Assembly (NCBI RefSeq): GCF_001194135.2 | Contig: NC_068998.1 | Span: 49,193,763-49,241,065 of the forward strand | Source: Octopus bimaculoides | Lineage: Eukaryota | Direction of reading: 5' to 3' | Length of the DNA stretch: 47,303 nt | Part shown: positions 1,130 to 46,153 of the stretch, in pieces | Numbering within the stretch: position 1 is the first letter of the stretch | Layout of the letters: each line of letters opens with the position of its first letter | The notes under the pieces: model-generated | Databases searched by the model: none | Told to the model about the DNA's origin: nothing | Seen by the model: the letters and a program-made list of their open reading frames with translations, nothing else | Position numbers and translations under genes: made by a program

Positions 1130-6911
<5,782 letters not shown>

Positions 6912-9379: not shown

Positions 9380-9416
9380 ATGAAATATTCCATATTTATA
9401 TTCTTCGTTCCTTTCC
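9380..9416 (+). CDS. Extra signal-peptide exon 1 upstream of P2 ([12 protein letters not shown]+c), possible alternative first exon
   Basis: 37-nt ATG exon followed by gtaagt, nearly identical to 1130..1166. It lies in a block (about 8665-9470) homologous to about 440-1220. Confidence 0.6.
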
Positions 9417-10397: not shown

Positions 10398-10518
10398 ATG
10401 AAATATTCCATATTTATTTTCTTTGTTGTTTTCCGTAAGTAGCGAAATGATAGATATTTCTGAATTTTGATATCTAGTTGCGAGTGTTATATACATACAC
10501 ACACACAGATATATATAT

Positions 10519-15503: not shown

Positions 15504-15597
15504 ATGAACTATCTTATGGTTATTTTACTTCTCATTTCTGGTAAGTAGCTATATGATAATTATTTTTGAATTAACGTTAATATTTATGGGGTGAGTT

Positions 15598-15629
<32 letters not shown>

Positions 15630-15755
15630 CAAACACACACACACATATACACACACACGCACACACAGGCACACACATATATATGCGATGTAGTAATATA
15701 TCTATACTGTTTCATCCTATTCTCTCTCATTCACTCATACATACTCACTTGCATA

Positions 15756-15786
<31 letters not shown>

Positions 15787-18091
15787 NNNNNNNNNNNNNN
15801 NNNNNNNNNNNNNNNNNNNNNNNNNNNNNNNNNNNNNNNNNNNNNNNNNNNNNNNNNNNNNNNNNNNNNNNNNNNNNNNNNNNNNNNNNNNNNNNNNNNN
15901 NNNNNNNNNNNNNNNNNNNNNNNNNNNNNNNNNNNNNNATATATATATAAATATATATATATATATATGCCGACGCACACACATAAAGACACACACATAT
16001 TCGTATAAATATATATTTCTGTACTTGAAGAAGAATACATGCACAGAATCCTGGAATATCCTTAAGTAACGAACCTGGAAAAGTAGAAGTCAAGAAGAAA
16101 AAAAAAACCTCAAAATATTGCCTTTGTGATTTGGACAAATAGATGGGATAGGATTATTCCACAGGCAAAAGAGAGACCAAATTCAGGTGTGTTGGAATGA
16201 CAAAAGAGAAATGAGACAGCATTTTTAGAGACATAGAAAAAAGACGATTATGCTAGGCACACTGTTAGAAAACAAATACCATGGGATTATTGCTTGCAGG
16301 AAATTAATTAGAAATCCTGAATTCTGTAGACTAAGAATAAAGAGTATTCTAGTAAAATCATTGGTGTTAAAATTCACCAGACATGAAGAGGGTGATTATT
16401 GCTGTTTAATCTGCAGCTAACGATATATCCTGAATCAAAAAGAAACTTTTTATTTTACAGTTTTAATGAGCTAGTGGTTGTCGATCTTGCAAACACCCTT
16501 TAATCTCTTCAAAAGCATCTGTGTAGAATTGTATCAATGTCACGTCTGTGAAGACCCTGCTAAGACTTCAATTCAAAAAACGTCTGTTTTGGGATAAAAA
16601 TTTATAACTTACGAATATAGAAAAGTTCAATTTCTAGAAACACAAGTTTTACGACGGAGTAGTTGTGGATTAATACAATTTTGTACCCAATAGTTGAGAT
16701 GCTGAGACCATTTCAACTTTCAGTTCAATATTATAACGTTCCAAGTTATAGCGAATATGGGAATCCGCGGTGTTTCTGCATTCCTATTAGAAATATGATG
16801 AATGATGATATCTAATACATGGCATGTATACTATCAATTGGCCTTCTTATAACAGTAAAGACACGAGAAATTGACTGATCAGTGTCAAGAAATTACCCAA
16901 CAAGAATAGCTCTCACGAACATTCGGTTCGTCTCTCTGGAGAATAAGGTAAAAGTAATAAGAGAAATCACAGATCGTCATGGAAAGTTCCTTCTTATATA
17001 TCCTCAGAGAAACGCTTAAGAAATGTGATAGATTTAGCGGTCATGAGTTACCAAGATGATGTCATACATCTTACCTTCTACCGGAGACTTAGTATTTATG
17101 CTACGGTCATCGTTGGGATGTGTAAGATAATATTTAATCTGCTTAAGATCATGTAACACCTAAGAAGTATCATCCAGACTCACTAAACTTAAATTCCCCT
17201 CCATATTATGTTTGAGCAAGTTGAATGGAAGACCAATCACGTTTGATTGACCAACAGTAATCCGCAATCAAGGTGACTTTCAGTTTGCCCTAGCATCGTG
17301 TTTCCATTTGCCCTGTAATCGAGATTCCATGATGCATATATCCTAATAGAATTTCTCTCCTTGTTCCTCACTGTCGTCGCCACAGTTGCTGGGGAAGTAT
17401 TTAAGAAGCGAGAGCAAAACATGCGTTCTTACACTCATTGCAGACCCAAGTTGTTGGAAACTGGAAATAAGGTTTTGGGTCATTTTTTCAAACTTATTTA
17501 TGTATGTATATATATTTCTTTTTCATCTATTATTTTGTTGATATCCCCTGGATTTACCAAACACTCAACCGGAATTATGGTTATTTGCATTCATTGTACA
17601 CGAAAATTTACAACATCAAGCCGAGACACGTGTTAAAAGCCTCTTAATTATATGTTAGTTGTTATGGCGCGGTCACTGAAGAGGGATTTTACCAAGCAAA
17701 TTATTTTATTTGCTAAAAAGATCCTGAAATCTTAGGTCTGACCGGAATAAAATAATAACGTAAAAAGTTTTTATTTTTCATTCCTTTTGAAGATTGCTCT
17801 TAAACGTGGATTTGGTCGTTTTGACTACTTCTTCTAGCGTGCAAAAACTACCTGTTGAAGGTAGTTTTCTCTTGTGTTTAAATGTACACTATTTTATATA
17901 TTGAGAAAAAAAATCGTTAGAATTTTGGAAAATTTCCTATTATTTCTTCATTATTACTAACGCTTTCGTTTCTCTCTAGAACTCTTTATTTGGAACGAAA
18001 GCGTTAATAATAATGAAGAAATAAAAGGAGTTTTTTCCCAAAATCCTGACGACTTTTTTTCTCAATATTCAATTCTGTACATCACTTCTAA

Positions 18092-18150
<59 letters not shown>

Positions 18151-19017
18151 CACCCCCTCCGCATATATATATATATATACATATTTACATATCTGTTACC
18201 TAATTATAGAAACATCAGTACAAATTGTGTTCAGAAACATTTAAAGAAATATGAATAGATAAATATTTATTCTTATCTATTTTGAATTTAAGTTGCTTTA
18301 ATTATTCTATTGTTGTCTAAAGATCTCCGAAGGGCTATAATCTCAATAATTTTATAATTGGCAGTGACGTTATGTTTTCTGTTTTGTTGTAGAACTATGT
18401 ACTTGATTTTTGATAACTATATATCTACGATTCTTTATTCTTCCTATTTTTCGGAATCATTTCAAAGGCAAGTGTGAGTCCAGAATAGAGTTGATGTTAA
18501 AATATAAACCATGAAACAATACTTGAATATATAATTTAGATTCCAGTAATTACGAGAATTTTGAGAAATACTTCCGATGGAAAAATCCATATTGTTTAAA
18601 ATGGTACAGAGATAAATTTAATAGCATGCGTTTAGTACGAGGCTTGCATTACTTTAGTTATATTTGTCAAAAACAATCAGTGATTGACAAATTAACGATT
18701 TAAATAGAGTCAGTAGCGATAGAATAATCGTGCAAGGAAAGAAAGATATTTTATTTAGCTAAATTTGTATTTTCTTTCAATTGAATAGTAAAGAATGTGG
18801 TTTAGAACTTATCACAATAGCATAAATGTAACGAAGAGTCATGGCTGCTATATTTTTTAAGAATCTCTCACAAACCATTGTTTCTTATATGTAAGATTTT
18901 TAATCGATCAGAGTATTCTGCACATGCTTATATGTCTGAAAATGTATTATCTTATTTCGAAACTAAGTTTTCACAATAATTCAACATTTATTTCAGGGAG
19001 ACTCTGGTGACAGCGTT
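15504..19017 (+). pseudogene. P3: decayed paralog (exon 1 15504..15540, exon 2 not found, exon 3 18547..18634, exon 4 stub 18997..19017)
   Basis: Exon 1 is MNYLMVILLLIS+g|gtaagt. Exon 3 reads NYENFEKYFRWKNPYCLKWYRDKFNSMRL, with Cys4 changed to Tyr and Cys6 to Arg relative to P4. Exon 4 matches P4 for 7 codons (GDSGDSV), then runs into a Tc1-like remnant. No DC...FC exon 2 is visible between 15960 and 18547, an interval with no gap. An exon 1-to-3 splice would frameshift. Confidence 0.8.
17899..18067. repeat. Imperfect inverted repeat (about 70-bp arms, 23-nt loop), foldback/MITE-like
   Basis: Left arm tattgagaaaaaaaatcgttag...ttatttcttcattattactaacgctttcgtt (17899-17970) pairs with right arm aacgaaagcgttaataataatgaagaaataa...ttttttctcaata (17994-18067). 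Confidence 0.8.
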
Positions 19018-19467
19018 CGAATTAATGCTGGAACGTAACTTTTCCAATGAACTCGTTTCAACATCCGACGAACACCTGATTTGGGGATTCCTATCTCACG
19101 ACTCAATTGTCCTACGGATTACTTTGGAGATCGGGAAAGGATTTCCATTAATTAGATGTGTCTACTGGGGCTGGCGGATGTTCGTGGTCTTCCAGAACGT
19201 TGCTTACTAGCGTTCTGAACAGTTCCATATGCTTCCAATTTATCTCTGATGCGAGTAATAATGCGTCGGGTTGGTGGTGTTTTCTGAAACTGTGTGTAAC
19301 ATTTTCGTGCTTCCAGTAGAACTTTAATATAATCTCTTTTCCTCGAATGTTAGTTGTGCATTTGCCATTGCGAAGGGTTGGTTGCGTCTGAAATAAAATA
19401 AAAAAAACAACAATACATTAGTAATCGTCTGTCAAACAGTGAGTACATCTTTTTGGGACACCCTGTA
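19018..19467 (-). mobile_element. 5' part of a Tc1/mariner-superfamily transposon: one terminal repeat plus degenerate N-terminal HTH region
   Basis: The minus strand begins TA-CAGGGTGTCCCAAAAAGATGTACTCAC, then broken frames MANAQLTFEE..., ITRIRDKLEAYGTVQNASKQRSGRPRTS, EIGIPKSGVRRMLKRVHWKSYVP. It is truncated at the junction with P3 exon 4. Confidence 0.75.
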
Positions 19468-20226: not shown

Positions 20227-21666
20227 ATGAAATGTTGTATGATTATTTTCCTGCTCATTTCTAGTAAGTAGCTATAGAATAATAATTTTTCAAATATTGT
20301 TAATATTTGTGCGCTGAATATACATGTGATATAAGCGATGTAGTAATGTATCAATTATGATTTATCCTTTTCTCCTATATTCACTTTCGAAATACATACA
20401 CACCTGCAGATATATATATATATGTATACGCATGCATGTATAGATACAAATATTAAGAAGAAACTTGCAAAGAAACGCACAAGGGACAACAATCATTGCA
20501 CACAGACAAACTGTCCCATCCGTGACACAGATTTATGCCAACGGGTAAATTTTGTGCATAGAATAATCCTGATAGAATTTCTCTCTTTGTTCCTCTGTTC
20601 CTCACTGTAGTCGCCACAATTCTTGGGAAATACTCGATATGTGAGTCCAAAAAGTGCATATTTACACTCAATGCAGATCAAAGTTGCTGGAAACTGGAAA
20701 TCAGGTCTTGAATTAATTTTTCATATTCTGGTAGCTAATAAGTTTTGGAATCTGTTTGAAGGGAAAACCAAGCATTTACCTCGACGCCGGCTTATGTTAC
20801 CTCAAAATGAGGTCCTTTATCAATTCCCGAAGATGACGGCCAACAAAGTTACTTACGTTAGCTTACCTTCTGTCATTCATGTAAACTTTGAATTCAGGTA
20901 CTTGAAAGCGTTACCGTACTTGTTCAGGGTTCACAGACAATTTTCATTTTCGATTTGGAGCCATTTTTTGATTTGGAGAGGCGGCAGTAGAATATTCTTG
21001 GGATCAATTGGTGGCACAGATTTCACGCCGAGATTTTGCCGACAAGAAAGTAAATTTTGAACGCAGTATAGCTGTGTAAATAGTAGAAATATTGTGTATT
21101 TGAACCTTAAAAGACTGAAAAATGTCAGCAGAGGGGTACAGGAGATAAAATTTCCTGATGTTTTCATACCTATACTACTTCCAAAATTTGCTTTCCTGGG
21201 TGTAAGATACCAAACACATTCGACGCTAATAGAAAAAAAATTGTATATAAAATGTTGTCGCATTCCAAAGAACTATGATTGTTTAGTGTTACATTTGTCG
21301 GTCATTTTGGGCAAAAGGCTGTCTAGCTTAATAGCAGGGACACAACAGGTGACTGAGGGCCAGGTGCTGGACATCCGTAGCCGTCCGCTGACAAACTTCA
21401 GCTTTATAATTATAAAATAACCAATCTTAGTTCTGCTTCCACGGCTGTACTGTATTTTGAAACTTACTTTCTTGTCTGTAAAATACCAAACACATTCTAC
21501 GATCGCATTCATTGAAAACGCAACAATTCACATTATGAAGTCAAACTTTACATTTTGTAGGTATCAGGGTATTTTCACGGGATTGCGATGAACTAGCACA
21601 ACGATTGTGCCCTTCTACGTTTGTAGTACTTCTCAATAATAAATTCGAGTATTGCAGGTATGTGTG

Positions 21667-24086: not shown

Positions 24087-25029
24087 CTAATTAGAGAAAA
24101 CACACTACATTGAACGAAATATGAATAAATAGATATTTATTTTTGCCCATTTTGAATTTAAGTTGGTTCAATTATTCTATCGTTGTTTGAAGATATCCGA
24201 CGGGCTAAACTCTAGATAATTTTATAATTGACAGTGAAGTTGTGTTTTCTGTTTTGATGTAGAATTATGAGAGGCTATTTTGTCTTCGATAACTGCGTAT
24301 ACATTTTTATCTATTCTACCTATAATTCTAAGCCATTTCAAAGGCGTGTCTAATTTCAGAATAGAGATGATATTAAAATATAAAACATAAAGCAATACCT
24401 GAATGTATAATTTTGTTTCATATTTTACCTTCCAGTACTTACAAGGACTTTGATAAATGCTTTCGATGGGAAAGCCTATCTTGTTTAAATCAGTACAGAA
24501 CTAAATTTAATAGCGTATGTGCGGTACGTAGCTTGTATTACTTTAGTTATATTTGCCAACAACCGTCTGAGAAACTAACGATTGAAATAGATTGCTTCAT
24601 TGTAAGAATATAAACAGTCATTATTTCCTTAAAGTCACTCGTGACGGAATAATGGTTCAAGGAAAGAAAAACTGTTATTTAGCTACATTTGTATTTTCTT
24701 TCAATTGTATTAGTAAAGAATGTGGTTTACGAATTGCCATAATGACATACACGTAACGAACAATCATGACTGCTATATTTTTAAATAACCTTTCAAAAAC
24801 AATTGTTTCCTACTTCTAAGATTTTTAATCGATCGCAATATTCTGACGTCTATATTCAGTAGAGGATGTTAGTGCATATGTTTGAAAATGTATTATCTCA
24901 TTTTGAAACTAAATTTTCACAATACTTCGATATTTATTTCAGGGAAAGTCTGGTGACAGCGTTGGAATAAGCAAAACATTTCTATTGCCGCTGAGTATTC
25001 AATATATTACTACAACTACATTAGATTGA
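20227..25029 (+). CDS. P4: paralog, 102 aa; join(20227..20263,21561..21657,24436..24523,24943..25029)
   Basis: MKCCMIIFLLISSIRVFSRDCDELAQRLCPSTFVVLLNNKFEYCSTYKDFDKCFRWESLSCLNQYRTKFNSVCAGKSGDSVGISKTFLLPLSIQYITTTTLD. Donors gtaagt/gtatgt/gtacgt. Exon 3 is visible inside track ORF 24413..24613. Confidence 0.85.
22745..23700 (-). mobile_element. Degenerate near-full-length mariner transposase in P4 intron 2
   Basis: Track ORFs on the minus strand: EHFRHLILFAFNQGSKAAKAVGDICAVYGEGAIAERIARDWYAKFK, GNVDLKDAPRSGRPVDFD, AWVPHAL (mariner WVPHEL), RIVTGGKRW (TGDEKW), LLHENALPH, HQPYAPDSAPTDFHIF (YSPDLAPSDFHLF). Contains frameshifts and catalytic-motif substitutions. Confidence 0.9.
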
Positions 25030-27911: not shown

Positions 27912-27948
27912 ATGAAATATTCTATGATTATTTTTTTTCTTATTTCTC
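27912..27948 (+). pseudogene. P5: orphan exon 1 (MKYSMIIFFLIS+c|gtaggt) with promoter block and partial intron 1; either a truncated duplicate or an alternative first exon for P6
   Basis: The conserved upstream block (about 27150-27910) and the 37-nt exon are present. The following sequence (about 28430-29100) matches intron 1 of other copies, then joins the P6 upstream block. No exons 2-4 were found. Confidence 0.65.
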
Positions 27949-29914: not shown

Positions 29915-30130
29915 TTAAGGCGGTGAACTGGTAGAACAGACAGCACGCCGGGTGAAATGCTTAGCGGTATTTCTTCTGTCTTTATGTTCTGAGTTCAAAT
30001 TCCGCCGAGGTCGACTTTGACTGTCATCTTTATGGGGTCGATAAATTAAGTACCAGTTGCATACTGGAGTCGATCTAATAAACTGGAGCCCTCCACCAAA
30101 ATTTCGGACCTTCAGTCTAGAGCAGAAACG
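29915..30130 (+). mobile_element. tRNA-like SINE in the P6 upstream region
   Basis: ggcggtgaactggtagaa...gagttcaaattccgccgaggtcgacttt...ggggtcgataaattaagtaccagtt...gaaacgaatatt, with a B-box-like GAGTTCAAATTCC. Other copies occur elsewhere in the window. Confidence 0.75.
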
Positions 30131-30390: not shown

Positions 30391-30722
30391 ATGAAATGTC
30401 TTATCATTTTTGTCTTCCTCATTTTCTGTAAGTATCTATATGGAAATTATTTTGTAATGTAAGAAAAAAAAAGCACTGGAGAGGCGAAGCATAACCAACG
30501 CGCAAACACACAGACGAACAGACTAAGACGAGGGATTTCAATAATCTGCTTTCGCTTACGCGCGCATGGTTATTGCTGTTCCTATTTGTGTGCAGAATAT
30601 TGATATGATATACGGGATCTATTTTGTCTCAAAACCATTTTTAATTCTCCCTTTTCATGCAGGCCCACATGAATTAATACATACATACAAACATACATGC
30701 ATGCCTACATGCATACTTATAA

Positions 30723-30765
<43 letters not shown>

Positions 30766-33135
30766 TAGCTGCTATATTAAATCTCTGAGCGAGATGTAAA
30801 CAGTAACAATATGAATTCGTAACATAATTGTCAACTAAGAGTTGCGTCCCATACGGGACAGTGCTAGCGGCGTTTATAGCCCCAGGAAGATATCTAATCC
30901 AGCCGGCCTAAGACACAAATTCTGTGTCACTAAGGATGTGCCTGAACCCAGAATGCAACTACCATCATCTGAAGGGCACAAAACGATCGAAAATTAAATA
31001 TAAATAGCAACAGAAGAGTCCGACAACAACAACAAAAACGACAATACAACCACACTTTACCTATAACCAAACAACGAAGACATTCCTGTTAAATGTACGT
31101 GGCATGAACCCATTACTCACTGCGCCAAAATGGAAGATCCCACACATAGAGAGATGGCTTGCCGAAACGGCATATTGCATCCCTTTCTTTATCCTTATTG
31201 AAACTCACTTAAATAGCACTCATATGGATGCCGAGGTAAAAATAATAGATTTCACCATCATCCGTACAGATTGCACAGACCGAAATAAAGTGAGAACAGC
31301 CATCTTTCTCCATGACTCCTTTTCAGTTGATGCCAAGGGCTTAGTTTCCAATGACTATTGTGAATCAATGTCCCTATTCATCAAGACCAAAGACAATCAT
31401 TGTTGGCTTTACAGGCCTCTTCAAACACCTCTAAAGTGCTTTGAAGAATGACTCAACAAAATCAATTCCTTCCTTCAAAAATACAACTCCGGAAACATAC
31501 TGGTGATGCGTGATTTGAAACTCCCTTATGTAAACTGGACCACCTATACTCTGAAGTTAGGCAAATGTTCTACAACAGACAAAGCAGCAGCAGAAGTATT
31601 CTTTAATCTAATGGATTTTTCCTGACTCAGCTAGTGCCGGAACCAACGAAATAGAATAAAACTGCTTTCGATCTAATATTAACCAACCACTATAGCTCTG
31701 TTCACAGTATTCCAGTTGAAAAGCCTCTCCTCTCAGACCACCCTATGATACTCTACAACTTTAATTTCCGGCATATCAAAACAAAAGCAGCCAATCCCAC
31801 TCCATTGCACTTATTTGACAACATAAATTTCAACAAAGCGGACTGGGGAGCAATCACAAAGGATCTGTCCTTCATAAATTGGTCCTTCACTCTCAGTTCC
31901 ACTGACATTGAGACCGCCTGGCAGCCCTTTGAGGACACTGCTGTTTATATGCGCTTCCAAGCTTCTGTTGTTGGATGCCATGAGAGTTTCACCTCAAGGT
32001 TGGGAGTTTCAGGGCATCCTCTCAATCGCAGGATAATGCTAATAATATAGCCTAAATAGGATAAACTACCCCTATTTTGCAGAAAAAAGTGTAGGTAGTT
32101 ATATATCTCTATAATTGTATATATATTCTACATGATAATTTTATAACACAATATCTGTGATTAAAATATTTTGGTTTATAAGTTGTGTTCATAATATAAA
32201 ACTTCTTATACCACGACTAAGAATCAAGATTGTGATATCTGCACAGAGTCATTAAAAATGTATTGTGAAGTTGTTTCGAAGCCTTTGTGATGCTGACAAA
32301 AAGATGGAACAAGATTGTTACAAAGTCAAAACGGAGACTAAATTCTGTCGTATTATGAAGGGAAAAAACAAATGAGACAGCATTTTCTACACTAATAAAA
32401 AGAACGAATATTATGCTAAACATGTAAATACAAGAAACACATTCAGTGTCCCCAAATTTATATTTTGACGAGTAATTATTACGTCAAATGTTTCATTCAA
32501 GGGTGTCGAAAGATACCCCATGAGGATTTATCCAAAATATGATTTATTTAAAGTATAATAAATGATAGCATAAAAGCTTCGGTTCCGACTGTAAACAAGC
32601 AGTTCTACGGACAACTGAATTACCTGTGCAATCCGATATGGTAGACACTGAGTGGAATATTTCAATTGAAGAAAACAAATCGTTAGACACAGCAATTTAT
32701 ACAACGTGTTCTAAATATTATCGATGATAAACCAGGTAAACAAATGGAGGCCATTTCTGAACATCATCATGTATCGGAGTCAGAAACGTGATGAAAGAGG
32801 ACACTCGATATATGGCGTGTTTATGTAAAGTAGCGTATTTATGTCAGCTGATAAGCACACGGTAAGAACTATATTGAAACGTCTTTAGGGCGCTCAAAAA
32901 TACACAAAATAGAACATCAAACAGTATAATCTCTATCATAAGAAACTAACATGATTTGTAATTGGGAATAATCATTCAATATTTTCAAGAGAAAACTCAT
33001 ATTTTAGGCGCAGTGTCATCTGGACTGGATTGCATTGAAGTTGCTAGACGTGACTGTCCTTCTACCTTTCTATATCCTCTACTAGATGTTAAGACATTCT
33101 GCAGGTAAGTATAGTTATATTTAAAAGCGTATATA

Positions 33136-33600: not shown

Positions 33601-34537
33601 GCATACATAAATATGCATACATATGTACACATATATATATATATATACATATATATACATATATGCATATATATACATATATCTATATATATACATATAT
33701 ACAGATATTTATATACATATACAAATATAAACACATACACGCACGCACACACACATCCATACATATATATATATATACATATATATGTATATATATATAT
33801 ATATATTACTCTCACCTCACCTAATTACCAGAGAGAAAATAGAAATTGAATTACATGAAAGTCAAGTCTGACTCCAGAATCGGGGTTTTCTAAATATATA
33901 AACAATACAAGAATACCCGAATGTATAATTTCCGTTCTAAGTTTTCCTTTCCAGAAACTTCAAGGACTTTAATTCTTGCCTCAGGGGAATTTCCGAAACA
34001 TGTGTACAATATTTCAGGGATATGGAATACAGCAGGTGCCCGGTAAGTAGTTGCCTTGCGTTCACTATATTTCCGTTAAAAAATGATCGACTGAGAAATG
34101 GACGATTTTAAAATCATTGTTTTAGTTTCAAAATCTAAACCTTAAATCACTCCTGATGGAACAATCGAGCGAAGAAAAACGAATTATATTTAACTCTCAA
34201 TGCAATACTAAATAATGGGGTATAGGACGTACAGCGATTGAAATAAACGTGATAAACAATCATGGTTGCAGTAATTTTAATTGCTTTTAACAATCTATTT
34301 TGTAATATCTGTAATCGATTGTTGTATCATGGTTTCTATACTCAGTAGAGGATAACTTTTCACATGGGAATATGATTGAAAATCTATTTTTTGTTTTGAA
34401 ACTAATTTTTCACAATAATTCGAATTATTTTTCAGAATAATTCTCCGCCGGGGAAGGTATTGTGGAACATAGTTGGAGTAAGCAAAATATTTCTACTGCC
34501 GCTGAGTCTTCAATATATGACAACCAACTCGATTTGA
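30391..34537 (+). CDS. P6: paralog, 107 aa; join(30391..30427,33008..33104,33955..34042,34436..34537)
   Basis: [107 protein letters not shown]. All three donors are gtaagt, and no N gap lies within the gene span. Confidence 0.9.
31075..31960 (+). mobile_element. Degenerate CR1/L2-like LINE ORF2 apurinic-endonuclease fragment in P6 intron 1
   Basis: Reads LLNVRG..., [36 protein letters not shown] (GDFNLP.INW-like), [12 protein letters not shown] and NFNKADW. These are ordered APE-domain motifs broken by stops and frameshifts. Confidence 0.85.
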
Positions 34538-36991
34538 AGTATATATGTCTTTTTAACTCTCTACAATACTCTCACAACATATCTTTAGTAAACACCACAT
34601 ATTTGTTATTAGTAACATAGCATGGTAAACCATTTCAATATGGCTACAATAACGGTAACGTAGGCATAAAATATAATGCAATGCCCCAAGAACGCAAAAT
34701 GGCATATTATAACGACCTAACTGAAATAGTAGTGTTCACAGTAAAATACATCCGTCAGCTACGTATTAAAATTTCCTTGTTTGAAAAAGTTGAAAGATGG
34801 TTCAATATAAGGACTGTTTTAGAAAATTACATTAAGAAACCGAGTAGTTACAATAACATAGAATTTCACAGTAAGCATAGGAATTAGAATTGTGAGAATG
34901 AGTTGATAGTTTCATAATACGGATACGCTAGATTTATCCCTTCAGCAATATTTTGAATATATTTTAATATCATACATAAGTATCTTTATAAAGCTTATGA
35001 TATAATATTTATGGCGCTACATGTTCGTTGCGAATAAAATTGTAATCGAAAAATTTCCAATGACAATGTTGATTATTACGCGTATATATTTGAAAAGAAT
35101 GTTTTTTAGAATGGGATTCTCTAGTTTCCTTCATATGAACAATGATCTTAAGACTGCTGGATTGGTAATTCCTGTAGTTATTCTAGATCAACCATTACCA
35201 GCATCTGCGTGCGTAAATGGAATCTAACAACAATACAACCAAACCTACGCCAAAGTTAGGGCATACAATCAATAAAATCACGAGTTAAAGATAGTGTGTC
35301 GGATATGTACAAGAAAGTGTATCTATCCAAACAAACCACTTCGTAAGTTAATTAGAAATATCTCCAAGCATACCGTATATGTTTTTAAAAAATACAACAT
35401 ACACTGCGGATCGATAAAACAATCTAACTTATATCCTCATAAATAACATAAAATTAGATGTGGCCCTGACTAATATATTTTGTGTCCATATCATCGATAA
35501 AAACATAGGCCAATCGAAAATTCATAGAAGTGGTAAGCGTAGCACAATGAAACTTCTCATTAGTAAAAAGGCCCTTCTAATTTACAATACATTATTGTTT
35601 TTATTAAATTTTGAATTTCAAAACTTTTCTTCCATTTACAGGTTAACAGCCAGTCAGTGTTTGGAGCTGCTATTGTAACTCTCTTACTTACATATACATA
35701 AGTATTTGTTATGGCACTAGAAGTACGTATGTCTATTAATTTGAAAAAATTATTCAATGAGATAAGCCATGAAAACAGGATTCAATTATTACAAGAGAAC
35801 GACTTGACTACATATGTGTACAATTTCGTACGTGACATTAAGGATATCTAATAATGTCCTACACTGTACTCTTTAAATATAGATTAAATTATCTTCTTGA
35901 TATTTCAACGACTTTTACTGCGTCAGCTTTTGTAATTTTCAAATCGTTTTAAATGTAACATACGAAGTATTTACCGCGGATGAAAATGTTGTCAAAGAAG
36001 CAGAATCAATAATGGTAAGAAAAAGATAAATTGTTTGACGCTGCCATGTAAACCTCAAATTGTACCTAAATTGAGATTCCGCATTATAGATCGTGTAGTA
36101 TGATGAAACAGAAATAGTACATTAAGTACACCCACACGAGATACTATGACCTATATTTTCGAAATAAAACCTTCTAGGACAATACATACATTTGCGTGCA
36201 CGTATATATCGGGTGATTCAATGTTAATTTAATAATAATTCTGCTTATATAAAGATGTGATGCATTTCACTTTCAAAGAAGTATTTAAAATCTGTGGCAA
36301 AGCACAACTGGGACGAAAGCAATGATGTCTTCCATTTGCGATCCTGTATTTCATGTGGTGATAAAGAGCATAGCTGTAGGAATATCTGTTATAGTACGAT
36401 TAATCTATATTTAGATTTGTAACTGTAATTTTCGGGTCATTCAAATATTATCGGTAAAATCTATATAAAAATGGTTTTGTGCTTACACCTACAACGCAAA
36501 ATAAATTATCACCATCCCTCTTATATTTTATAAACTCACAAATTCGAAACAATGACTATTAGTCAACTCATGCCAACCCTATCACATAAAGATTAATAGA
36601 CATTATAATCTAGTGAAAAGAATTTATACCATAGTTTCGGGTACCAATGTACGTGAATGAAGACTCCGTGAACTTAATTGAACATTAATCTGAAGACATT
36701 ACCCAACATCATTTGAAAGATGAAGAGATTAAACGAGCAAAGAAATATTTATACAAACATTAAAATAAATCCCATATGTTTCCACACATCACCCTATATA
36801 CTTTATAGCAGAGACTCCATCTATGTATATCTGAAGAAGGAATTGTATTCCGAAATATCATCGGACTATAGATAACTTAATTACAACAGGTATATAGTCC
36901 ATCTTTTGTATTATAGTGCATTGTTGTACCATTCAACACTTTTTATTCTTTACAAACAATGTACAATGCTTCCAGCGAACTACAATACTCT

Positions 36992-37022
<31 letters not shown>

Positions 37023-37267
37023 NNNNNNNNNNNNNNNNNNNNNNNNNNNNNNNNNNNNNNNNNNNNNNNNNNNNNNNNNNNNNNNNNNNNNNNNNNNNNN
37101 NNNNNNNNNNNNNNNNNNNNNNNNNNNNNNNNNNNNNNNNNNNNNNNNNNNNNNNNNNNNNNNNNNNNNNNNNNNNNNNNNNNNNNNNNNNNNNNNNNNN
37201 NNNNNNNNNNNNNNNNNNNNNNNNNNNNNNNNNNNNNNNNNNNNNNNNNNNNNNNNNATATATATAT

Positions 37268-37482
37268 ACCGAGCAAAGCCTTGCGATTAGATTTGGTGGA
37301 CGGATGATTAGCGTTATACCATCTGCCTTTACGTTCTGAGTTCAAATTCCACGGATGTCGACTTTGCCTTTCATGATTTCAGGGTCGATAAATTAAGTAC
37401 CAGTCGCATACTGGTGACGATCTAAACGACTGGCCCGCTGCACAAAATCTTCGGGGTTTGTGCCTAGTGCAGAAATGAATAT
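37268..37482 (+). mobile_element. Same SINE in the P7 upstream region
   Basis: gagttcaaattccacggatgtcgactttgcctttcat...gggtcgataaattaagtaccagt...gaaatgaatatt. Confidence 0.75.
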
Positions 37483-37733
37483 TGTTCTTCGTTCACTTAG
37501 TACGGGTGCACAGAAATACCACAATTTTCTGTAAAATTATCTTTTATACACCTGTCGTCTTCGTGAATGTACAAGAATAATTATATGAAAATGTTATATG
37601 GCTTTGCATGTCATTAATCAAATTTATATGCTTTCTCTGCCAATTGAAACACTTGCCACATCATATTTAATTAAACTAGATATTTCCACGTGCAAGTCGA
37701 CAAAGTACGAGGTGTTCATCACGAAAGTTGATA

Positions 37734-40700
37734 ATGAAATATTTTATCATTTTTGTCTTCCTCATTTTCCGTAAGTAGCTATATGGAAATTATTTTGTAA
37801 TGGAAAAAAGAAAAAAAAAGGTCACAACAGAGGCGATGCAAACCCGGTGTGAAGATAAATTGTTTTGCAAAATATCGTCTGGCTTACAATGCGTTGCTTA
37901 TGCATGGTTTTTATTGAGATAAATTAGGCTTTGGAAACGTTTAAGTAAACTTGCCTATCGGGAAATTTGTAAGTTCTATTTATTTTTTGTGTTTTAAGTA
38001 TTACAATTATTGGAATACTCCGATGAAATCAAGAAATCAACTCGGGAATAAACGAATCCTCGATTCCATCACTACAAACACACACGCACACGCAGAGTCG
38101 CAAATGTATGTATTTATATATGCTTGAAGATAATCAAACCAAAATTTCATCATTTCGAACCACTTCACCAATGATTATTTCAACTAAATTTGGTGAATAT
38201 CCATTCAACTCTTTTTTTGTTCTAGTAATTTTTGCAAATACACAGACAAACATGTTAAGATGAGTGATTACAATAATCTGCTTTCGCTTATGCGCGCTTG
38301 ATAGTAGTTGTTCCTATTTGTGCACAGAATATAGATATGACATACAGGATGTGGTACTATATCTATTTTGTCTCAACAAATTTCACTTTCTTTCTTTTTA
38401 TACGCACACACATGAATACATACATACATACATACATATATACATAGATAAATGCATACATACATGCATACTTACAAAGCTATATTGATACATACATATA
38501 TACATAGATAAATGCNNNNNNNNNNNNNNNNNNNNNNNNNNNNNNNNNNNNNNNNNNNNNNNNNNNNNNNNNNNNNNNNNNNNNNNNNNNNNNNNNNNNN
38601 NNNNNNNNNNNNNNNNNNNATATATATATATATATATATATACATAAGTATATATTTACTAGAAACTGCCAGGCACAGAATCTTTGAATATTCTTAAGTA
38701 TTCAACCTGTACTAATGAAGCAGTTACTAAGATGGCGACAGTACAAGACAAGAATGTATAAAACTTAAAAGAATGCTGCTGTAGTTGGAATTTGAGAAAA
38801 GAATATTTATAAGGCGTTCATTGTTTTTTATTATTATTATTTCCTTGTTTAAGATAAAATACTTAAGGAGCTATTTATTTTCAGTTTTAGTAAAAAGTAT
38901 AAGTGCCTTAATAGTTTCACATTGAAAATTTTACATTACAAATTTATAGATTTAAGATAATCAAGCAATAGCAATTAAAGTAATATTGATAATTAAATCA
39001 CATAAGTTTTACACAAAATATAGGAAGACATTTTTATTTATTGCGCCCAATTAAAATACAGTAAAATCTCGCAGTACTATTACAACGTTGTACGAGTAAT
39101 TTGCTCTACAATCCAAGGTTCGTGTAAATTTTTGTCTTGAAACACAGGCGGAAAATCACAGTATGATCACACAAATCGTCCTATCTTTAGGGTAATTCGT
39201 TTAATAAACAAGTTTACACATTTCTTTTATATCCGCCTTTCTTTTTATAATTGTCACTATACTTGTAACTACACCATTTCTGTTTTAAAACACAGAAAAT
39301 TATTATTGATTGAATTTTGTGTGAAGGAACGGATTAATCGTATTTTAGTTAATTTCAATGTGGAAAATTGATTTGTAAAACAAGTGATTTGTAAGACGAG
39401 CTCGGTCATGGAACGAATTAAACTCATACTGCGTGGAATAACTGTATTTTTCTAAGTGTAAATATAAAACATTTTGTTATATGAATAAAGATAACTTTAA
39501 AGAATTTAATACTTTTGTTACTATAGAAACATGTTTTACTGATTTTACTCTTTTGTACATACGGGGTGATATCAAGCAGTTCTCGGACTACATCTGCAGC
39601 GCGGCAGCAGATGACAGGTTACAGATGCGTGCGCGGTGAGGGCTAGAACTCATCTTCATAAAGTAATGTCCGAGTTAATTCACTGTGTTTACTTCGCAAA
39701 TCGCGACATTTGCGTTTTTGTGATCTCGTTTATGATGTATTTGATATTTCGTCATGGACAGAAAGCTGGAACAAAGGGCAAATAGTTTGCCCAAATAGTT
39801 TGGCATCAACGTCCATTTCTCTCCCTGTATCAGCCTGTTATCGGTGTCTTTTCTCTTCCTCTTCTGATACAAAGGTTTCAACTATAGTCGCATATTTCCT
39901 TCCTCTTGTAAAGAAAGTTATCCTCTCTATTTGTTCCTCCAAGATTTCCTCTTTCTCTTCCAGCGGTGCGTGTTCTATTCTCCTATTTACATTCGAAAAT
40001 GTTCTGAATATGACCGTCTTGTTTTCCAGTTTTCTTTTTTTCTCCAGGGTCATTTTTATAGTTGACCCCTCTTTCTTTATCATGCCACAATATTTGGTTA
40101 TCTTCTCCTAATTCCAATCCAACATCTCCGGCTTCAGCACACGTGGATCTAGGGGAACTCGACCTCCAGTAGCTTCCGCATAACTTTTCATTTTTTTTCA
40201 ATAATTCACTACCACCCAACGATAGTGGCTTCGCACAAAAATTCCGCTTAAACTTCTTCAAAAGCCAACACAAGGGCGTGGCTTGGTAGCGTCAATGCAT
40301 TTTCGCCTTTCAAAACTTATAGAATTTCAAGTGAAATAAATTCACCGATCTACAAATTTAGAAATATTGAATTTCTAAATCTCTCCAGGAGACACACAAT
40401 GCAGTACGATAAAGTGGTGGTTTGTTTCCGACTTAATTTGGCAGTATTGGGACTGCCACATTATACATTGTCGATGAAAATCCTGGTAAACAAATGGAGG
40501 TCTATGCCGAACGACATTACGTATCAGAAACGTGATGAACGAGTTCATTCGATTTAAGGCGTGTTTTCTGATGTGTCGATATTATGTCAGCTGATAAACA
40601 CAATACACAATTGTCACAAATACTCGACCAGAAGGATACTGAAACGACTTCACCACATCCAAGAATACACCAAACACCACATCCAAGAATACACCAAACA

Positions 40701-41698
40701 CCACATCAAAAAAACCATATGTATAATCTGTATCATATGAATTCCTAACGACCTAAAATGATTTGTAATTTAACAAAAAAAAAAATTTCGGAATAATCAT
40801 TTAAACATTCACTATAGAAACCTCACTTATTTTAGGCGTAATGTCATCGAAGCTGGATTGCAGTAAACTTGCAAATGATAAATGTCCTGGCTACTATAAA
40901 GATTTTGAAGTCAGTCATGAGGGATTCTGCAGGTAAATATAATTATATTTACAAGTGTATATGATTTTACTTTGGGTATTAGTATGCATTTAATATTTAT
41001 ACAATTGCATATTGAGAAATATTTCCTTTTATAAAACTATTACCTAAATGCTAGATGTATATAGAATCATGTCAATGAACCTGAATATGTCCTTTGATTA
41101 ATATAGCAAATCTCCATGCACAATTCAATATAAACACCATTTTGTTTTTAAACTAGCACCGGCAAAAATGCACTTTGCGCTACTAATTATCTAACGTGGT
41201 TGACCGGGATATTAGTGGTTAACACACACGCACACGTGCACACACACACATGCACACACAGACGTACACACACTCAGAGACGCATACACACACATACACA
41301 TATATATATAGCAATAATTACTGTCAAGCATTGTGTAGAATATATTCTAGAAATGATCGCGGGTAAGGCCAAAAAATGCGAAGTAAATGCAAGGTAAAAT
41401 CACAAGAAAACAAATATGTGAATTAACGTAGGGCTTAACTTGTATTCAATATTTCGGGGTTATGAACCCATCTACTCACGTTCACACACACATCGGCAAC
41501 ATTTCTGAATTTCTTGAGGGTAGGGTCATAACCCCAAAATATGGAATACAAGGTAAGTCTACGCTAATTGAAATATGTTTTCTGGTGATTTACTTTGCAT
41601 TTACTTCCCATTGTTTTGGCCTTACCCGCGAACTTTTATACAACACACACACACACACATATACACATATACATATATATATATATACATACATATAT

Positions 41699-41739
<41 letters not shown>

Positions 41740-42470
41740 NNNNNNNNNNNNNNNNNNNNNNNNNNNNNNNNNNNNNNNNNNNNNNNNNNNNNNNNNNNNN
41801 NNNNNNNNNNNNNNNNNNNNNNNNNNNNNNNNNNNNNNNNNNNNNNNNNNNNNNNNNNNNNNNNNNNNNNNNNNNNNNNNNNNNNNNNNNNNNNNNNNNN
41901 NNNNNNNNNNNNNNNNNNNNNNNNNNNNNNNNNNNNNNNNNNNNNNNNNNNNNNNNNNNNNNNNNNNNNNNNNNNNNNNNNNNNNNNNNNNNNNNNNNNN
42001 NNNNNNNNNNNNNNNNNNNNNNNNNNNNNNNNNNNNNNNNNNNNNNNNNNNNNNNNNNNNNNNNNNNNNNNNNNNNNNNNNNNNNNNNNNNNNNNNNNNN
42101 NNNNNNNNNNNNNNNNNNNNNNNNNNNNNNNNNNNNNNNNNNNNNNNNNNNNNNNNNNNNNNNNNNNNNNNNNNNNNNNNNNNNNNNNNNNNNNNNNNNN
42201 NNNNNNNNNNNNNNNNNNNNNNNNNNNNNNNNNNNNNNNNNNNNNNNNNNNNNNNNNNNNNNNNNNNNNNNNNNNNNNNNNNNNNNNNNNNNNNNNNNNN
42301 NNNNNNNNNNNNNNNNNNNNNNNNNNNNNNNNNNNNNNNNNNNNNNNNNNNNNNNNNNNNNNNNNNNNNNNNNNNNNNNNNNNNNNNNNNNNNNNNNNNN
42401 NNNNNNNNNNNNNNNNNNNNNNNNNNNNNNNNNNNNNNNNNNNNNNNNNNNNNNNNNNNNNNNNNNNNNN

Positions 42471-42505
<35 letters not shown>

Positions 42506-43253
42506 TAAAACCGACTGAATTACCAGGGAGACAATACATATTGAATTCCATGGAAATGGAGTCTGACGCAAGGATTGGGATTTTACAAATATATAAACAA
42601 TACAAAAATATCCGAAAGTATAATGTTCATTCATAATTTTACTTTCCAGTAACTTTGAAGGATTTGTAAAGTGCATGATGAGATTTACCTATGTGTGTTT
42701 AGAGCATTTTAAAGACATCCATTATTGGAAGTGCGTGGTAAGTATCTTGCATTGTGTTTGCTATATTTCCATTTAAAATTATCGACTGAAAATTAACGAT
42801 TTAAAAAGTATAGATTTATTTAAAAGATCTAAACAATCATTTATTTCCATTGCATCACCCTTGAAGGAACAATCGAACGAAGAAAGAACGAATATCATTT
42901 AGCAATGATTTTTTTTCAATTCAATACTAAATACTTGGACATAGGGTGTACCGCGATGAAATAAACGTAATGAACGGCCACGGTTGAAGTAATTTTTATA
43001 ACATTTGACAATCTATTTGACAATCGATTTGTAATCGATTGTAGTATTATGACTTCTATATTCAGTAGAGGATAATTTTTGACATAGGAATATGCTAGAA
43101 ATCTATTATTGGTTTTAAAACTAAGGTTTCAAAATTCAACATATTTTTCAGAGTGAACCACCGCCGGTGATGGCATTGGGCAACACAGTTAGGGTAAGCA
43201 AAATTTTTCTACTGCCGCTCAGTCTTCAATATATGACAACCATGTCGATTTGA
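37734..43253 (+). CDS. P7: paralog, 107 aa; join(37734..37770,40836..40932,42650..42737,43152..43253)
   Basis: [107 protein letters not shown]. Canonical splice sites; exon sizes match P6 (37/97/88/102). Confidence 0.85.
39057..39446. mobile_element. Tigger/pogo-like non-autonomous DNA element
   Basis: Bounded by TA-CAGTAAAATCTCG and GCGTGGAATAACTG-TA (degenerate CAGT...ACTG ends with TA duplication). The internal gtaagacgagctcggtcatggaacgaattaaactc tract is typical of such MITEs. Confidence 0.5.
39690..40290 (-). mobile_element. Probable degenerate retrotransposon ORF1/gag-like fragment in P7 intron 1
   Basis: Overlapping, codon-like, K/E-rich minus-strand ORFs (KKRKLENKTVIFRTFSNVNRRIEHAPLEEKEEILEEQIERITFFTRGRKYATIVETF). 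Absent from paralogous introns. No diagnostic motif was recognised. Confidence 0.35.
40651..40707. repeat. 24-nt tandem duplication CACCACATCCAAGAATACACCAAA x2 plus a partial copy
   Basis: Read directly. Confidence 0.85.
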
Positions 43254-45226
43254 TGTATATGTCTTTTTAATTCACTAAAATTCTATCGCAAAATATCTGT
43301 TGTAAACGCCACTCCCTATTTGTTATTAGTAACAGAGTATGGTAAACCATTTCAATGTGACTACAAGAACGGTAACGCAAACAAGAATATAATGGAATGC
43401 TTCCGGAACGCAAAATGTCATATTGTAACTTTCTATCTCAGATAGAAGTGTTCGCAGTAAAATACATGCTTCAGTAATTATTAAATATTCCTTGTTTGAG
43501 AAAGTTAAAAGATGGTTTCAATGTAAGGGATATTTTGGAGAATTACATTAAGAGACCGTTGTAGCTACTCTAACATAGAATTTCACAGTAAGCATAAGAA
43601 TTAGAATTATGAAAATGAGTTGATTGTTTTATAATAGGTATACCCTAGATTTACCGCCGCACCAATATTTTGAATGTATTTTAGTAATGTACATATGTAT
43701 AATCTTTATAATACATATGATATAATATTTATGGCGCTACATGTTCGTTGCGAATAAAATTGTCATCGAAAAATTTTCAATGACAATGTTGATTATTTCG
43801 CGTATATATTTGAAAGAATGTTTCTTAATAATGGGATTGTGTAGTTTCCTTCATATGAACAATGATCTTAAGACTGCTGGATTGGTAATTCCTGTAGTTA
43901 TTCTAGATCAACCATTACCAGCATCTGCGAGCGTAAATGGAATCTAACAACAATACAACCAAACCTACGCCAAAGTTAGGGCATAAAATCAATAAAATTA
44001 CGAGTTAAAGATAGTGTGTCGGATATGTACAAGAAAGTGTATCTATCCAAACAAACCACTTCGTAAGTTAATTAGAAATATCTCCAAGCATACCGTATAT
44101 GTTTTTAAAAAATACAACATACACTGCGGATCGATAAAACAATCTAACTTATATCCTCATAAATAACATAAAATTAGATGTGGCCCTGACTAATATATTT
44201 TGTGTCCATATCATCGATAAAAACATAGGCCAATCGAAAATTCATAGAAGTGGTAAGCGTAGCACAATGAAACTTCTCATTAGTAAAAAGGCCCTTCTAA
44301 TTTACAATACATTATTGTTTTTATTAAATTTTGAATTTCAAAACTTTTCTTCCCTTTACAGGTTAGCAGCCAGTCAGTGTTTGGAGCTGCTATTGTAACT
44401 CTCTTACTTACATATACATAAGTATTTGTTATGGCACTAGAAGTACGTATGTCTATTAATTTGAAAAAATTATTCAATGAGATAAGCCATAAAAACAGGA
44501 TTCAAATATTACAAGAGATCGACTTGTCTACATATGTGTACAATTTCGTACGTGACGTTAAGGATATCTAATAATGTCCTACACTGTACTCTTTAATTAT
44601 AGATTAAATTATCTTTTTAATATTTCAACGACTTTTACAACGTCAGTTTTTAATCTTCAAATCGCTTTAAATGTAACATTCGAATTATTCACCCTGGATG
44701 AAAATGGTACCATACAAGCAGAATCAATAATGGTAAAAAAGGGAGAAATTGTTTTACGCCTCATTATAAGCCTCAAATTGCACATTAATTCAGATTTAGC
44801 ATTATGGATCGTGAAGTTTGATCAAACAGAAATAGTACATTAAGTACACCCACAGGAGATACTATGACCTATATTTTTGAAATAAAACCTTCTAGGACAA
44901 TACATACATTTGCGTGCACGTATATATTTGGTGATTCAATGTTAATTTAATAATAATTCTGCTTATATAAAGATATGATGCATTTCACTTTCAAAGAAGT
45001 ATTTAAAATCTGCGGCAAAGCACAACTGGGATGAAAGCAATGATGTCTTCCATTTGCGATCCTGTATTTCATGTGGTGATAAAGAGCATAACTGTAGGAA
45101 TATCTGTTATAGTACGATTAATCTATATTTAGATTTGTAACTGTAATTTTCGGGTCATTTAAATACTATGGGTAAAATTTATATAAAATGATTGTGTGCA
45201 TTAATAGAATATACATACATACATAC

Positions 45227-45277
<51 letters not shown>

Positions 45278-45734
45278 NNNNNNNNNNNNNNNNNNNNNNN
45301 NNNNNNNNNNNNNNNNNNNNNNNNNNNNNNNNNNNNNNNNNNNNNNNNNNNNNNNNNNNNNNNNNNNNNNNNNNNNNNNNNNNNNNNNNNNNNNNNNNNN
45401 NNNNNNNNNNNNNNNNNNNNNNNNNNNNNNNNNNNNNNNNNNNNNNNNNNNNNNNNNNNNNNNNNNNNNNNNNNNNNNNNNNNNNNNNNNNNNNNNNNNN
45501 NNNNNNNNNNNNNNNNNNNNNNNNNNNNNNNNNNNNNCCTAAATTTGGAACTAATATTCAAATGGCTTCCATTTCTCCATGTCATCTGATATTTTCTCAA
45601 TTACAACATGAATATATATGCTCTCCAGCGACGTTGAATGGTCTGAAATTCAAGAAATGTTTCCTTAAAAAATAGATAAATAATAGTGGTTAAATTTAGG
45701 CCGAACACATTGTATGTGTAGTATTGTTTTTCGT

Positions 45735-45870
45735 TTCCGCCGAGGTCGACTTTGCCTTTTATCCCTTCAGGATCGATAAATTATGTACCAGTTGCGTGCT
45801 GGGGTCGATCTAATCGACTGACCCCTTCACCCAAAAATTCGGGCCTTGTGCCTCGAGTTGAAACGAATGT
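45735..45870 (+). mobile_element. Same SINE, 5'-deleted, in the P8 upstream region
   Basis: ttccgccgaggtcgactttgcc...gatcgataaattatgtaccagtt...gaaacgaat. Confidence 0.75.
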
Positions 45871-46116: not shown

Positions 46117-46153
46117 ATGAAGTATTTTATCATTTTTGTCTTCCTCATTTCCC
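46117..46153 (+). CDS. P8: exon 1 (MKYFIIFVFLIS+c|gtaagt) of a further paralog, presumably continuing beyond the window
   Basis: 37-nt exon with the conserved upstream block. Downstream intron sequence matches intron 1 of P7 (about 37770-38480) and P6 (about 30430-30960). Confidence 0.7.

Follow-up and report, generated by a model that had tools for sequence, protein, structure and literature searches.

Why should two neighbouring genes differ more in their coding exons than in the introns between them? The question is raised by a 47,303-bp stretch of Octopus bimaculoides chromosome CM046618.1 (assembly GCA_001194135.2), referred to below as the window, which is AT-rich, contains ten assembly gaps and, on self-comparison, proves to carry a head-to-tail array of related units (P1 to P8) on the + strand. 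It is rare for exons to outpace the introns of their own gene, and the pattern is a hallmark of molecular arms races and recognition systems, as in venoms, gamete recognition and immunity. An earlier note on this DNA had described such a contrast for exon 3 of units P6 and P7 and had read it as toxin-like hypervariability driven by diversifying selection. We find that the domain-encoding exons have gained replacements 2–6 times faster than the adjacent introns, in paralogs as well as in positional orthologs, and that the reading frames, splice sites and cysteine scaffold are intact and the signal and tail conserved.

An intact unit consists of five exons: a 37-nucleotide (nt) signal exon that ends in phase 1, exon 2 (88–97 nt) and exon 3 (88 nt) with three cysteines each, exon 4, and exon 5 about 1.1 kb farther downstream. 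The models of P1, P2, P4, P6 and P7 have canonical AG/GT borders and open frames throughout, and in these five units, as in the O. vulgaris copies OvB and OvC introduced below, frames, splice sites and all six cysteines are intact. The two versions of exon 3 compared here are both 88-nt phase-1 exons with AG/GT borders.

Exon 3 of P6 and P7 is identical at 48 of 88 nt (40 mismatches, 54.5%), and the encoded peptides share 9 of 29 residues, three of which are cysteines. The hand count given earlier (about 40 differences, about 55% identity, 9 of 29 residues, 3 cysteines) is reproduced by this recount, and the interval assigned to it, 33955–42737, runs from the first base of P6 exon 3 to the last base of P7 exon 3. 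Exon 2 is identical at 59 of 97 nt (60.8%). Intron 3, on the other hand, is identical at 311 of 386 positions (80.6%) and intron 2 at 75–80%; the first 70 nt of intron 3, judged by eye to be roughly three-quarters identical, match at 51 of 69 positions (74%). The signal exon (34 of 37 nt, 92%) and exon 4 (83%, with a read-through tail that is identical in protein) are, as had been noted, nearly the same in part. The contrast is highly significant in Fisher's test, both for exon 3 versus intron 3 (p = 1.6e-6) and for exons 2 and 3 versus introns 2 and 3 (p = 5e-9), and for exons 2 and 3 alike the divergence begins at one splice site and ends at the other.

O. vulgaris locus L004 (protein P0020) is syntenic with window positions 28.4–43.8 kb and holds three relevant copies. 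OvB is the positional ortholog of P6, with which it is collinear over about 13 kb at 76–85% identity, and OvC is the positional ortholog of P7. The upstream copy OvA (L004 3571–4200) is a mosaic with an exon 3 and intron 3 similar to P6 and OvB (intron 86–89%) and an exon 4 region similar to P4 (88.6%), which is evidence that units have exchanged sequence within the O. vulgaris lineage. In all pairs examined, the identity of exon 3 falls below that of intron 3: 85% versus 90% for P1/P2, 74% versus 82% for P3/P4, 47–52% versus 67–74% for P8 against P6 or P7, 58% versus 89% for OvA/OvB, 45.5% versus 85.1% for P6/OvB and 77.3% versus 84.4% for P7/OvC. The linker part of exon 4 follows exon 3 in this respect (52–69% identity), and the signal exon and exon 5 are conserved.

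The intron 3 identities of cross-paired copies are 78.3% (P6–OvC), 79.3% (P7–OvB) and 77.1% (OvB–OvC), compared with 84–85% for the orthologs, and yield the tree ((P6,OvB),(P7,OvC)). On this topology, the P6/P7 duplication is older than the species split, and introns 2 and 3 have not been homogenised since. Conversion has nevertheless touched the array. A 700-bp tract that includes exon 5 (35169–35868, + strand) is 98.6% identical to the P7 copy at 43889–44588, compared with about 80% for the adjacent introns; the identity of the tract to its OvB ortholog is only 76%. This pattern indicates recent gene conversion or, with less likelihood, an assembly duplication.

Since synonymous sites are few, MG94xHKY codon models were fitted to the exons and the flanking introns together, the introns serving as neutral reference, with two free factors, omega and rho, the latter being the synonymous rate of the exon relative to the introns. 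(Pairwise maximum-likelihood dN/dS values from Biopython, F3x4, were numerically unstable on alignments of 29–61 codons, with omega ranging from 0.06 to 7.7, and were replaced by these fits.) Equal rates in exons and introns are rejected, both in the pair (p = 1e-9) and in four taxa (p = 1e-12); overall the exons evolve at 2.1–3 times the intron rate, with about 2.2 times for exons 2 and 3 together. NG86 estimates of nonsynonymous (dN) and synonymous (dS) divergence over exons 2 and 3 are 0.63 and 0.63 for P6/P7 (intron divergence K 0.23), 0.66 and 0.40 for P6/OvB (K about 0.17–0.22), and 0.27 and 0.41 for P7/OvC (K about 0.18–0.20). With rho fixed at 1 (intron-calibrated branches), model M2a beats M1a (2dl = 72.5, twice the log-likelihood difference) and assigns 70% of codons an omega of 3.5. 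The classical signature is carried by exon 2, which taken alone has a rho of about 1.1, i.e. a synonymous rate equal to that of the introns, and an omega of 1.6–3.

We consider it somewhat better than an even chance that this pattern reflects diversifying selection on the exposed helix surfaces of a module that serves extracellular binding or recognition. Selection is preferred because dN lies above every neutral yardstick available and because exon 2 shows the classical signature; in addition, if omega averages about 1 over a domain whose cysteines and core residues are fixed, it must exceed 1 at other sites. In such a scheme, the Octopus-only genes on CM046618.1 would form a birth-and-death tandem array in which the six cysteines and a few aromatic core positions of the domain are held constant, nearly all its remaining positions being free to vary. 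Recurrent positive selection would act on helix surfaces that are presumed to be solvent-exposed, and purifying selection together with local gene conversion would keep the signal and the tail uniform.

Several results weigh against selection as the cause. The fits draw on about 35 synonymous sites and on only four or five sequences with alignable introns. For P6/P7, NG86 dN/dS is 0.29 for exon 3 and 1.0 for exons 2 and 3 together, and in P1/P2 dN (0.11) only equals the intron rate, with dN/dS about 0.3. When rho is left free, exons 2 and 3 give rho = 1.6 and omega2 = 2.1, and omega above 1 is not significant (p = 0.088); measured against exon synonymous sites, omega for the two exons is 1.3–2.1 (p = 0.09–0.3). 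Exon 3 alone gives rho of about 2.8–3.9, which differs from 1 at p = 0.0017–0.012, and omega of 0.7–1.25. Diversifying selection as proposed in the earlier note is thus partly supported: dN does exceed intron divergence in P6/P7 and in the orthologs, but omega above 1 loses significance once rho is free. A dN/dS above 1 for exon 3 itself, the exon singled out in that note, is not borne out by the NG86 value or by a likelihood fit in which an omega near 1 accompanies a roughly threefold rise in rate across the whole exon.

An input of mutations or sequence exchange limited to exons and strongest in exon 3, operating in the absence of net positive selection, is possible but on the unlikely side. 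Its source could be short ectopic conversions or exon swaps from other family members, or an error-prone process associated with exons or mRNA, with most non-cysteine sites neutral (omega about 1). Exon 3 on its own is fitted by a threefold increase in rate and an omega close to 0.9, and M1a with free rho (log likelihood, lnL, −787.1) performs about as well as M2a with rho = 1 (lnL −786.5). Third positions of exon 3 differ at 38–55%, versus 16–21% of intron positions, and by a three-point hand estimate OvB exon 3 changed at about 28 of its 88 nt on a branch where intron 3 changed by about 6%. In exons 2 and 3 of P6, P7, OvB and OvC, sense-strand A<>G differences per purine site (0.29–0.32) exceed C<>T differences per pyrimidine site (0.12–0.16; p = 0.02–0.05), whereas the introns are symmetric (0.09–0.11). 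Mosaics such as OvA and the recent 700-bp conversion tract show that exchange does occur, and raised synonymous divergence together with an error-prone-polymerase hypothesis has been discussed for conotoxins (PMC3862624). However, no donor for any exon 3 is found among 42 family proteins, the best non-self match being 41% or less; the divergence is bounded by the splice sites of both exons, which is not expected of random conversion tracts; and exon 2 lacks a synonymous excess. Codons with an unchanged amino acid carry 11 synonymous differences in five pairs, compared with 7.0 expected from intron rates, and this 1.6-fold ratio (P about 0.1, Poisson estimate) is no significant excess and can be reconciled with the intron rate. 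Multiply changed codons are therefore the main source of the rho signal in exon 3. A mean omega of about 1 with invariant cysteines and core also still implies values above 1 elsewhere; the two explanations are not mutually exclusive. A more specific variant, in which part of the hypervariability comes from an exon-delimited process that passes through the spliced transcript and acts on an Octopus-only surface-protein family, is improbable. The roughly threefold synonymous and nonsynonymous rate of exon 3, the splice-site borders of the divergence and the exon-only A<>G excess would together fit candidate routes such as RNA- or cDNA-templated patch repair between paralogs, or the genomic hard-wiring of adenosine-to-inosine edited sites.

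The pattern is not accounted for by neutral decay, by old exons next to converted introns, or by assembly error. If P6 and P7 were ancient paralogs with simply old exons and introns homogenised by gene conversion, the active conversion seen around exon 5 and the high synonymous divergence of exon 3 would be in keeping, and hyperdivergent exons could block heteroduplex extension (mismatch-limited conversion). We nonetheless hold this very unlikely, and for introns 2 and 3 the alignments largely refute it. Intron similarity through recent gene conversion was the outcome that, according to the earlier note, would undo its own proposal, and it is rejected for these introns: the P6–P7 identity of 80.6% is close to that of cross-species paralogs (77–79%) and below that of orthologs (84–85%), as a duplication followed by speciation with no within-species homogenisation would give. 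The exon excess persists between positional orthologs, so that conversion between paralogs is irrelevant to it, and synonymous divergence in exon 2 equals that of the introns. Relaxed constraint, or pseudogenes that drift neutrally, is suggested by P3, which has lost two cysteines and its tail, and by P1/P2 with a dN about equal to the intron rate; but neutral drift cannot exceed the intron rate by 2–6 times, the seven intact copies in the two species retain frames, splice sites and six cysteines, and NCBI models exist for the loci, leaving this explanation with hardly any probability. Least credible, to the point of being negligible, is an artefact in which gaps join unrelated pieces and the P7 exons derive from different genes. 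Three gaps do lie within the span of the P6–P7 comparison, and an assembly duplication is in principle conceivable for the 700-bp tract with 98.6% identity. None of the gaps touches an exon, however, and across both intronic gaps the exon order, strand and flanking sequences are collinear with the gap-free O. vulgaris ortholog. The contrast is also present in ungapped stretches (exon 3 versus intron 3), and in P6/OvB and OvA/OvB, two comparisons free of gaps. The intergenic gap falls in a stretch of about 0.5 kb in the window that corresponds to about 2.6 kb in O. vulgaris, so that some intergenic sequence may be missing there.

A full HMMER scan with the five proteins of the window returned 35 representatives at E up to 1e-3, nearly all of them 'uncharacterized' O. 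bimaculoides proteins from the same chromosome and a few from O. vulgaris or O. sinensis; the scan matched no protein of a squid, cuttlefish or other mollusc. Word-indexed protein searches returned only the O. bimaculoides models of the window itself and no orthologs, and the literature held no description under the LOC identifiers or of octopus tandem secreted families. The genes appear to constitute an undescribed family of at least 35 members that is found only in Octopus. Its proteins are about 105–120 residues long: a signal peptide is followed by a domain predicted to form three helices and three disulfides, then by a linker and a hydrophobic tail at the C-terminus. Among 31 members the six cysteines alone are invariant (C-x7-C-x12-17-C-x8-C-x7-C-x9-11-C), followed in conservation by Ala8 and by aromatic or hydrophobic residues at positions 16, 26, 30, 33, 37, 40 and 48 with i, i+3/4 spacing; the other domain positions are highly variable and polar on average. 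The architecture first noted for P6 and P7, in which signal, cysteine scaffold and tail are conserved and the middle is hypervariable, is in this way borne out across the whole family. An AlphaFold2 model of the domain has three helices and a pLDDT of 86.7. Foldseek searches of the PDB with the full-length and domain-only models yielded nothing with E below 4, and RGMB and RAMP extracellular domains came up only at E of about 10; PDB sequence searches with the family profile and with protein P0015 gave nothing meaningful, and P6 and P7 have no match in Pfam. Judged by its predicted features, the protein is probably a secreted or glycosylphosphatidylinositol (GPI)-tethered binding module that takes part in a fast-evolving recognition interaction.

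Multi-domain relatives (P0015, P0016/P0037, P0025/P0036) contain 2 to 7 tandem copies of the six-cysteine domain and a YP..PD..YC.RL motif; they come from other chromosomes or other Octopus species and have the strongest RGM_N scores. One partial member, P0031 (WP_234446203.1), lies on a 322-nt contig labelled 'Campylobacter fetus', where it is spliced and continuous from the signal to Cys6, and is almost certainly cephalopod, hence eukaryotic, cDNA contamination in a bacterial assembly.

The units can encode two different C-termini. Exon 4 contains an internal GTAAGC donor at 34478 in P6 (after ...NIVG) and at 43194 in P7 (after ...NTVR). In isoform P0003 this donor is joined to exon 5, which encodes V(N/S)SQSVFGAAIVTLLLTYT and a stop codon, and the resulting tail, ...VNSQS-VFGAAIVTLLLTYT followed by a stop, is common to most family members. 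Reading through the donor gives an alternative tail (34478–34537 in P6, 43194–43253 in P7) that is less hydrophobic than the exon-5 tail and is the ending used in NCBI model P0001. The read-through tail is in frame in P1, P2, P4, P6, P7 and OvB, with mostly synonymous differences; its frame is broken in P8 by a 2-nt deletion, and in OvC it is altered non-conservatively. P1, P2 and P4 have ATAAGC instead of the GTAAGC donor, and in these units only the read-through C-terminus seems possible. The exon 4 peptide pointed out earlier is this read-through alternative; that it might be the true C-terminus is ruled out by the family alignment and by isoform P0003, which place the canonical tail in a separate exon 5. 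Inspection of the sequences reveals a hydrophobic N-terminus and the shared hydrophobic exon-5 tail, features of the GPI type; the tail resembles a GPI-attachment signal, from which we infer that the proteins may be GPI-anchored.

The features of the array are listed in the table. The locus of NCBI model LOC128249758 corresponds to window positions 10227–44537, with which it is identical base for base, and its protein is matched by the one assembled from the exons recognised earlier. P7 has an uninterrupted spliced frame of 107 codons, the first 90 residues of which equal NCBI model P0003, a model that confirms P7 exons 1–4. The window holds nine signal exons (starting at 1130, 9380, 10398, 15504, 20227, 27912, 30391, 37734 and 46117) versus six gene bodies; the body of P8 lies beyond the window, in the next 20 kb (locus L002). 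In the decayed copy P3, exon 3 has lost two cysteines (Cys to Tyr and Cys to Arg) and exon 4 ends prematurely; an exon 2 could not be detected within the unit (15504–19038).

Features of the octopus gene array, in window coordinates
Feature	Coordinates	Strand	Remarks
P6 exon 1 (signal peptide, phase 1)	30391–30427	+	ATG, GTAAGT donor, spliced frame; 92% identical to P7 exon 1
P6 exon 2 (97 nt; helix 1 and loop; Cys1–3)	33008–33104	+	60.8% identical to P7; 52% (protein) to OvB
P6 exon 3 (88 nt; helices 2–3; Cys4–6)	33955–34042	+	54.5% identical to P7; 45.5% to OvB
P6 exon 4	34436–34537	+	linker 34436–34477; internal GTAAGC donor 34478; read-through tail to 34537
P6 exon 5 (VNSQSVFGAAIVTLLLTYT, then stop)	35642–35701	+	family-typical hydrophobic C-terminal tail; homologous to P7 exon in NCBI model P0003
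P7 exon 1 (signal peptide)	37734–37770	+	92% identical to P6 exon 1
P7 exon 2	40836–40932	+	ortholog is OvC exon 2 at L004 29921–30017
P7 exon 3	42650–42737	+	77.3% identical to OvC versus 84.4% in intron 3
P7 exon 4	43152–43253	+	linker 43152–43193; internal GTAAGC donor; read-through tail to 43253
P7 exon 5 (VSSQSVFGAAIVTLLLTYT, then stop)	44362–44421	+	its end is the end of the NCBI gene range
P1 gene	1130–6911	+	exons 1130–1166, 5369–5456, 6276–6363, 6771–6911; exons 1–3 within NCBI model P0004
P2 gene	10398–12653	+	exons 10398–10434, 11242–11338, 11997–12084, 12513–12653; identical to NCBI model P0002
P2 exon-5-like reading frame	13592–13645	+	downstream of P2 exon 4
P3 decayed copy	15504–19038	+	signal exon 15504–15540; exon 3 18547–18634; truncated exon 4 18997–19038
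P4 gene	20227–25029	+	exons 20227–20263, 21561–21657, 24436–24523, 24943–25029
P5 orphan signal exon	27912–27948	+	no gene body of its own
Further orphan or extra signal exons	9380–9416; 46117–46153	+	46117–46153 is P8
Assembly gap	37023–37257		intergenic
Assembly gap	38516–38619		P7 intron 1
Assembly gap	41740–42470		P7 intron 2, within TA microsatellite

Some NCBI models contain splices between units: in P0001 the P4 leader is followed by P6 exons 2–4, and in P0004 P1 exons 1–3 run out of frame into P2 exon 2. Such models may represent alternative leader usage or read-through chimeras. P7 intron 2 also contains a nested inverted-repeat element of about 300 bp (41345–41643) that resembles a miniature inverted-repeat transposable element and is absent from P6. 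A repeat similar to short interspersed elements (…GAGTTCAAATTCCGCCGAGGTCGACTTTG…GTCGATAAATTAAGTACCAG…) lies directly upstream of several signal exons (29920–30100, 37290–37440, 45560–45735 and other units); Rfam gave no match in the window, this repeat included, at the gathering threshold.

The evolutionary pattern is one already known, that of accelerated mature-peptide exons in tandem arrays, and the gene family appears to be new; the pattern is found here in a large Octopus-only family clustered on one chromosome. In predicted fold and membrane tail the proteins most resemble the BMP-binding N-terminal domain of the RGM co-receptors. That domain, RGM_N (PF06535; RGMA, RGMB, RGMC), forms a bundle of three helices with three disulfides in GPI-anchored proteins (PMC7354924), and the octopus domain likewise has three predicted helices, six cysteines and a GPI-like tail, with an identical FC-x8-C-x7-C spacing. 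RGM_N is the only Pfam family matched repeatedly (9 of 31 members, E 0.02–1), with all matches below the gathering cut-off of 24.2 bits. The four-repeat O. vulgaris protein P0015 attains 37.9 bits summed over four stretches, but no single-domain member reaches the threshold. A comparison with the RGMB N-domain by hhalign gave a probability of 14.6% over 28 columns, and Foldseek matched the full-length model to RGMB 6z3j_D at E = 9.6 with a TM of 0.39, with no RGM match for the domain-only model. The octopus domain differs from RGM_N in its first cysteine pair (C-x7-C versus C-x4-C) and its shorter last helix, and the octopus proteins end 30–45 residues after Cys6 and lack the von Willebrand D domain with its GDPH autocleavage site as well as the RGD motif of RGM, so that of this context they have only the hydrophobic C-terminal tail in common. 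We therefore speak of resemblance rather than membership; a kinship would be new but is unproven.

The Ly6/uPAR proteins are comparable in that they are small, combine a signal peptide with a C-terminal GPI-type signal, occur in tandem clusters and diverge rapidly. They are, however, rich in beta structure with 8–10 cysteines, whereas the octopus domain is predicted to be all-helical with six, and no match to Pfam UPAR_LY6 was found among the family proteins scanned. For the red and green opsins of primates, Shyue et al. (1994) and Zhou and Li (1996) reportedly found introns homogenised by conversion and exons kept apart by selection. The octopus array is similar in having introns more alike than exons in tandem paralogs, with conversion active in the array, but it differs in that introns 2 and 3 are without recent homogenisation and the exon excess persists between orthologs.

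In snake venom gene arrays, coding exons other than the signal exon are said to diverge faster than introns (Nakashima et al. 1993 and 1995). The phospholipase A2 (PLA2), three-finger toxin and small serum protein arrays share with the octopus genes the tandem arrangement and non-signal exons that outpace introns; fold, taxon and exon structure differ, and the octopus comparison involves only 4–8 sequences. The label 'toxin-like' given to the locus earlier holds as an analogy of pattern only, the predicted three-helix bundle being neither a three-finger nor a PLA2 fold. The octopus genes do display the toxin-family combination of conserved signal and introns, a hypervariable exon and a fixed cysteine framework, but nothing indicates that they encode a toxin.

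The same combination is seen in the conotoxin superfamilies of Conus, with their conserved signal exon, introns that are alike throughout a superfamily and across species, fixed cysteine framework and hypervariable mature-peptide exon. Phase-1 signal exons are common in conotoxin genes and are likewise present in the octopus genes. The octopus domain differs in being split over two exons, in having a conserved hydrophobic tail after it instead of a propeptide before it, and in its predicted fold, a 55-residue three-helix bundle and not a knottin-like peptide; the octopus omega above 1, moreover, is not significant once the synonymous rate is free. In conotoxins, both Dn and Ds are raised in the mature-toxin exon, as synonymous and nonsynonymous change are in the octopus hypervariable exon, and the same ambiguity between selection and mutation is on record for them (PMC3862624). 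If selection is the correct reading, the octopus array would represent a hitherto unknown extracellular recognition system, with the recognition of pathogens, gametes, conspecifics or self as candidates. If instead the mutational reading is true, it would be the second animal system, after the cone-snail toxins, with raised synonymous and nonsynonymous change in the mature-peptide exon, and one in which positional orthologs and introns are on hand to dissect the mechanism.

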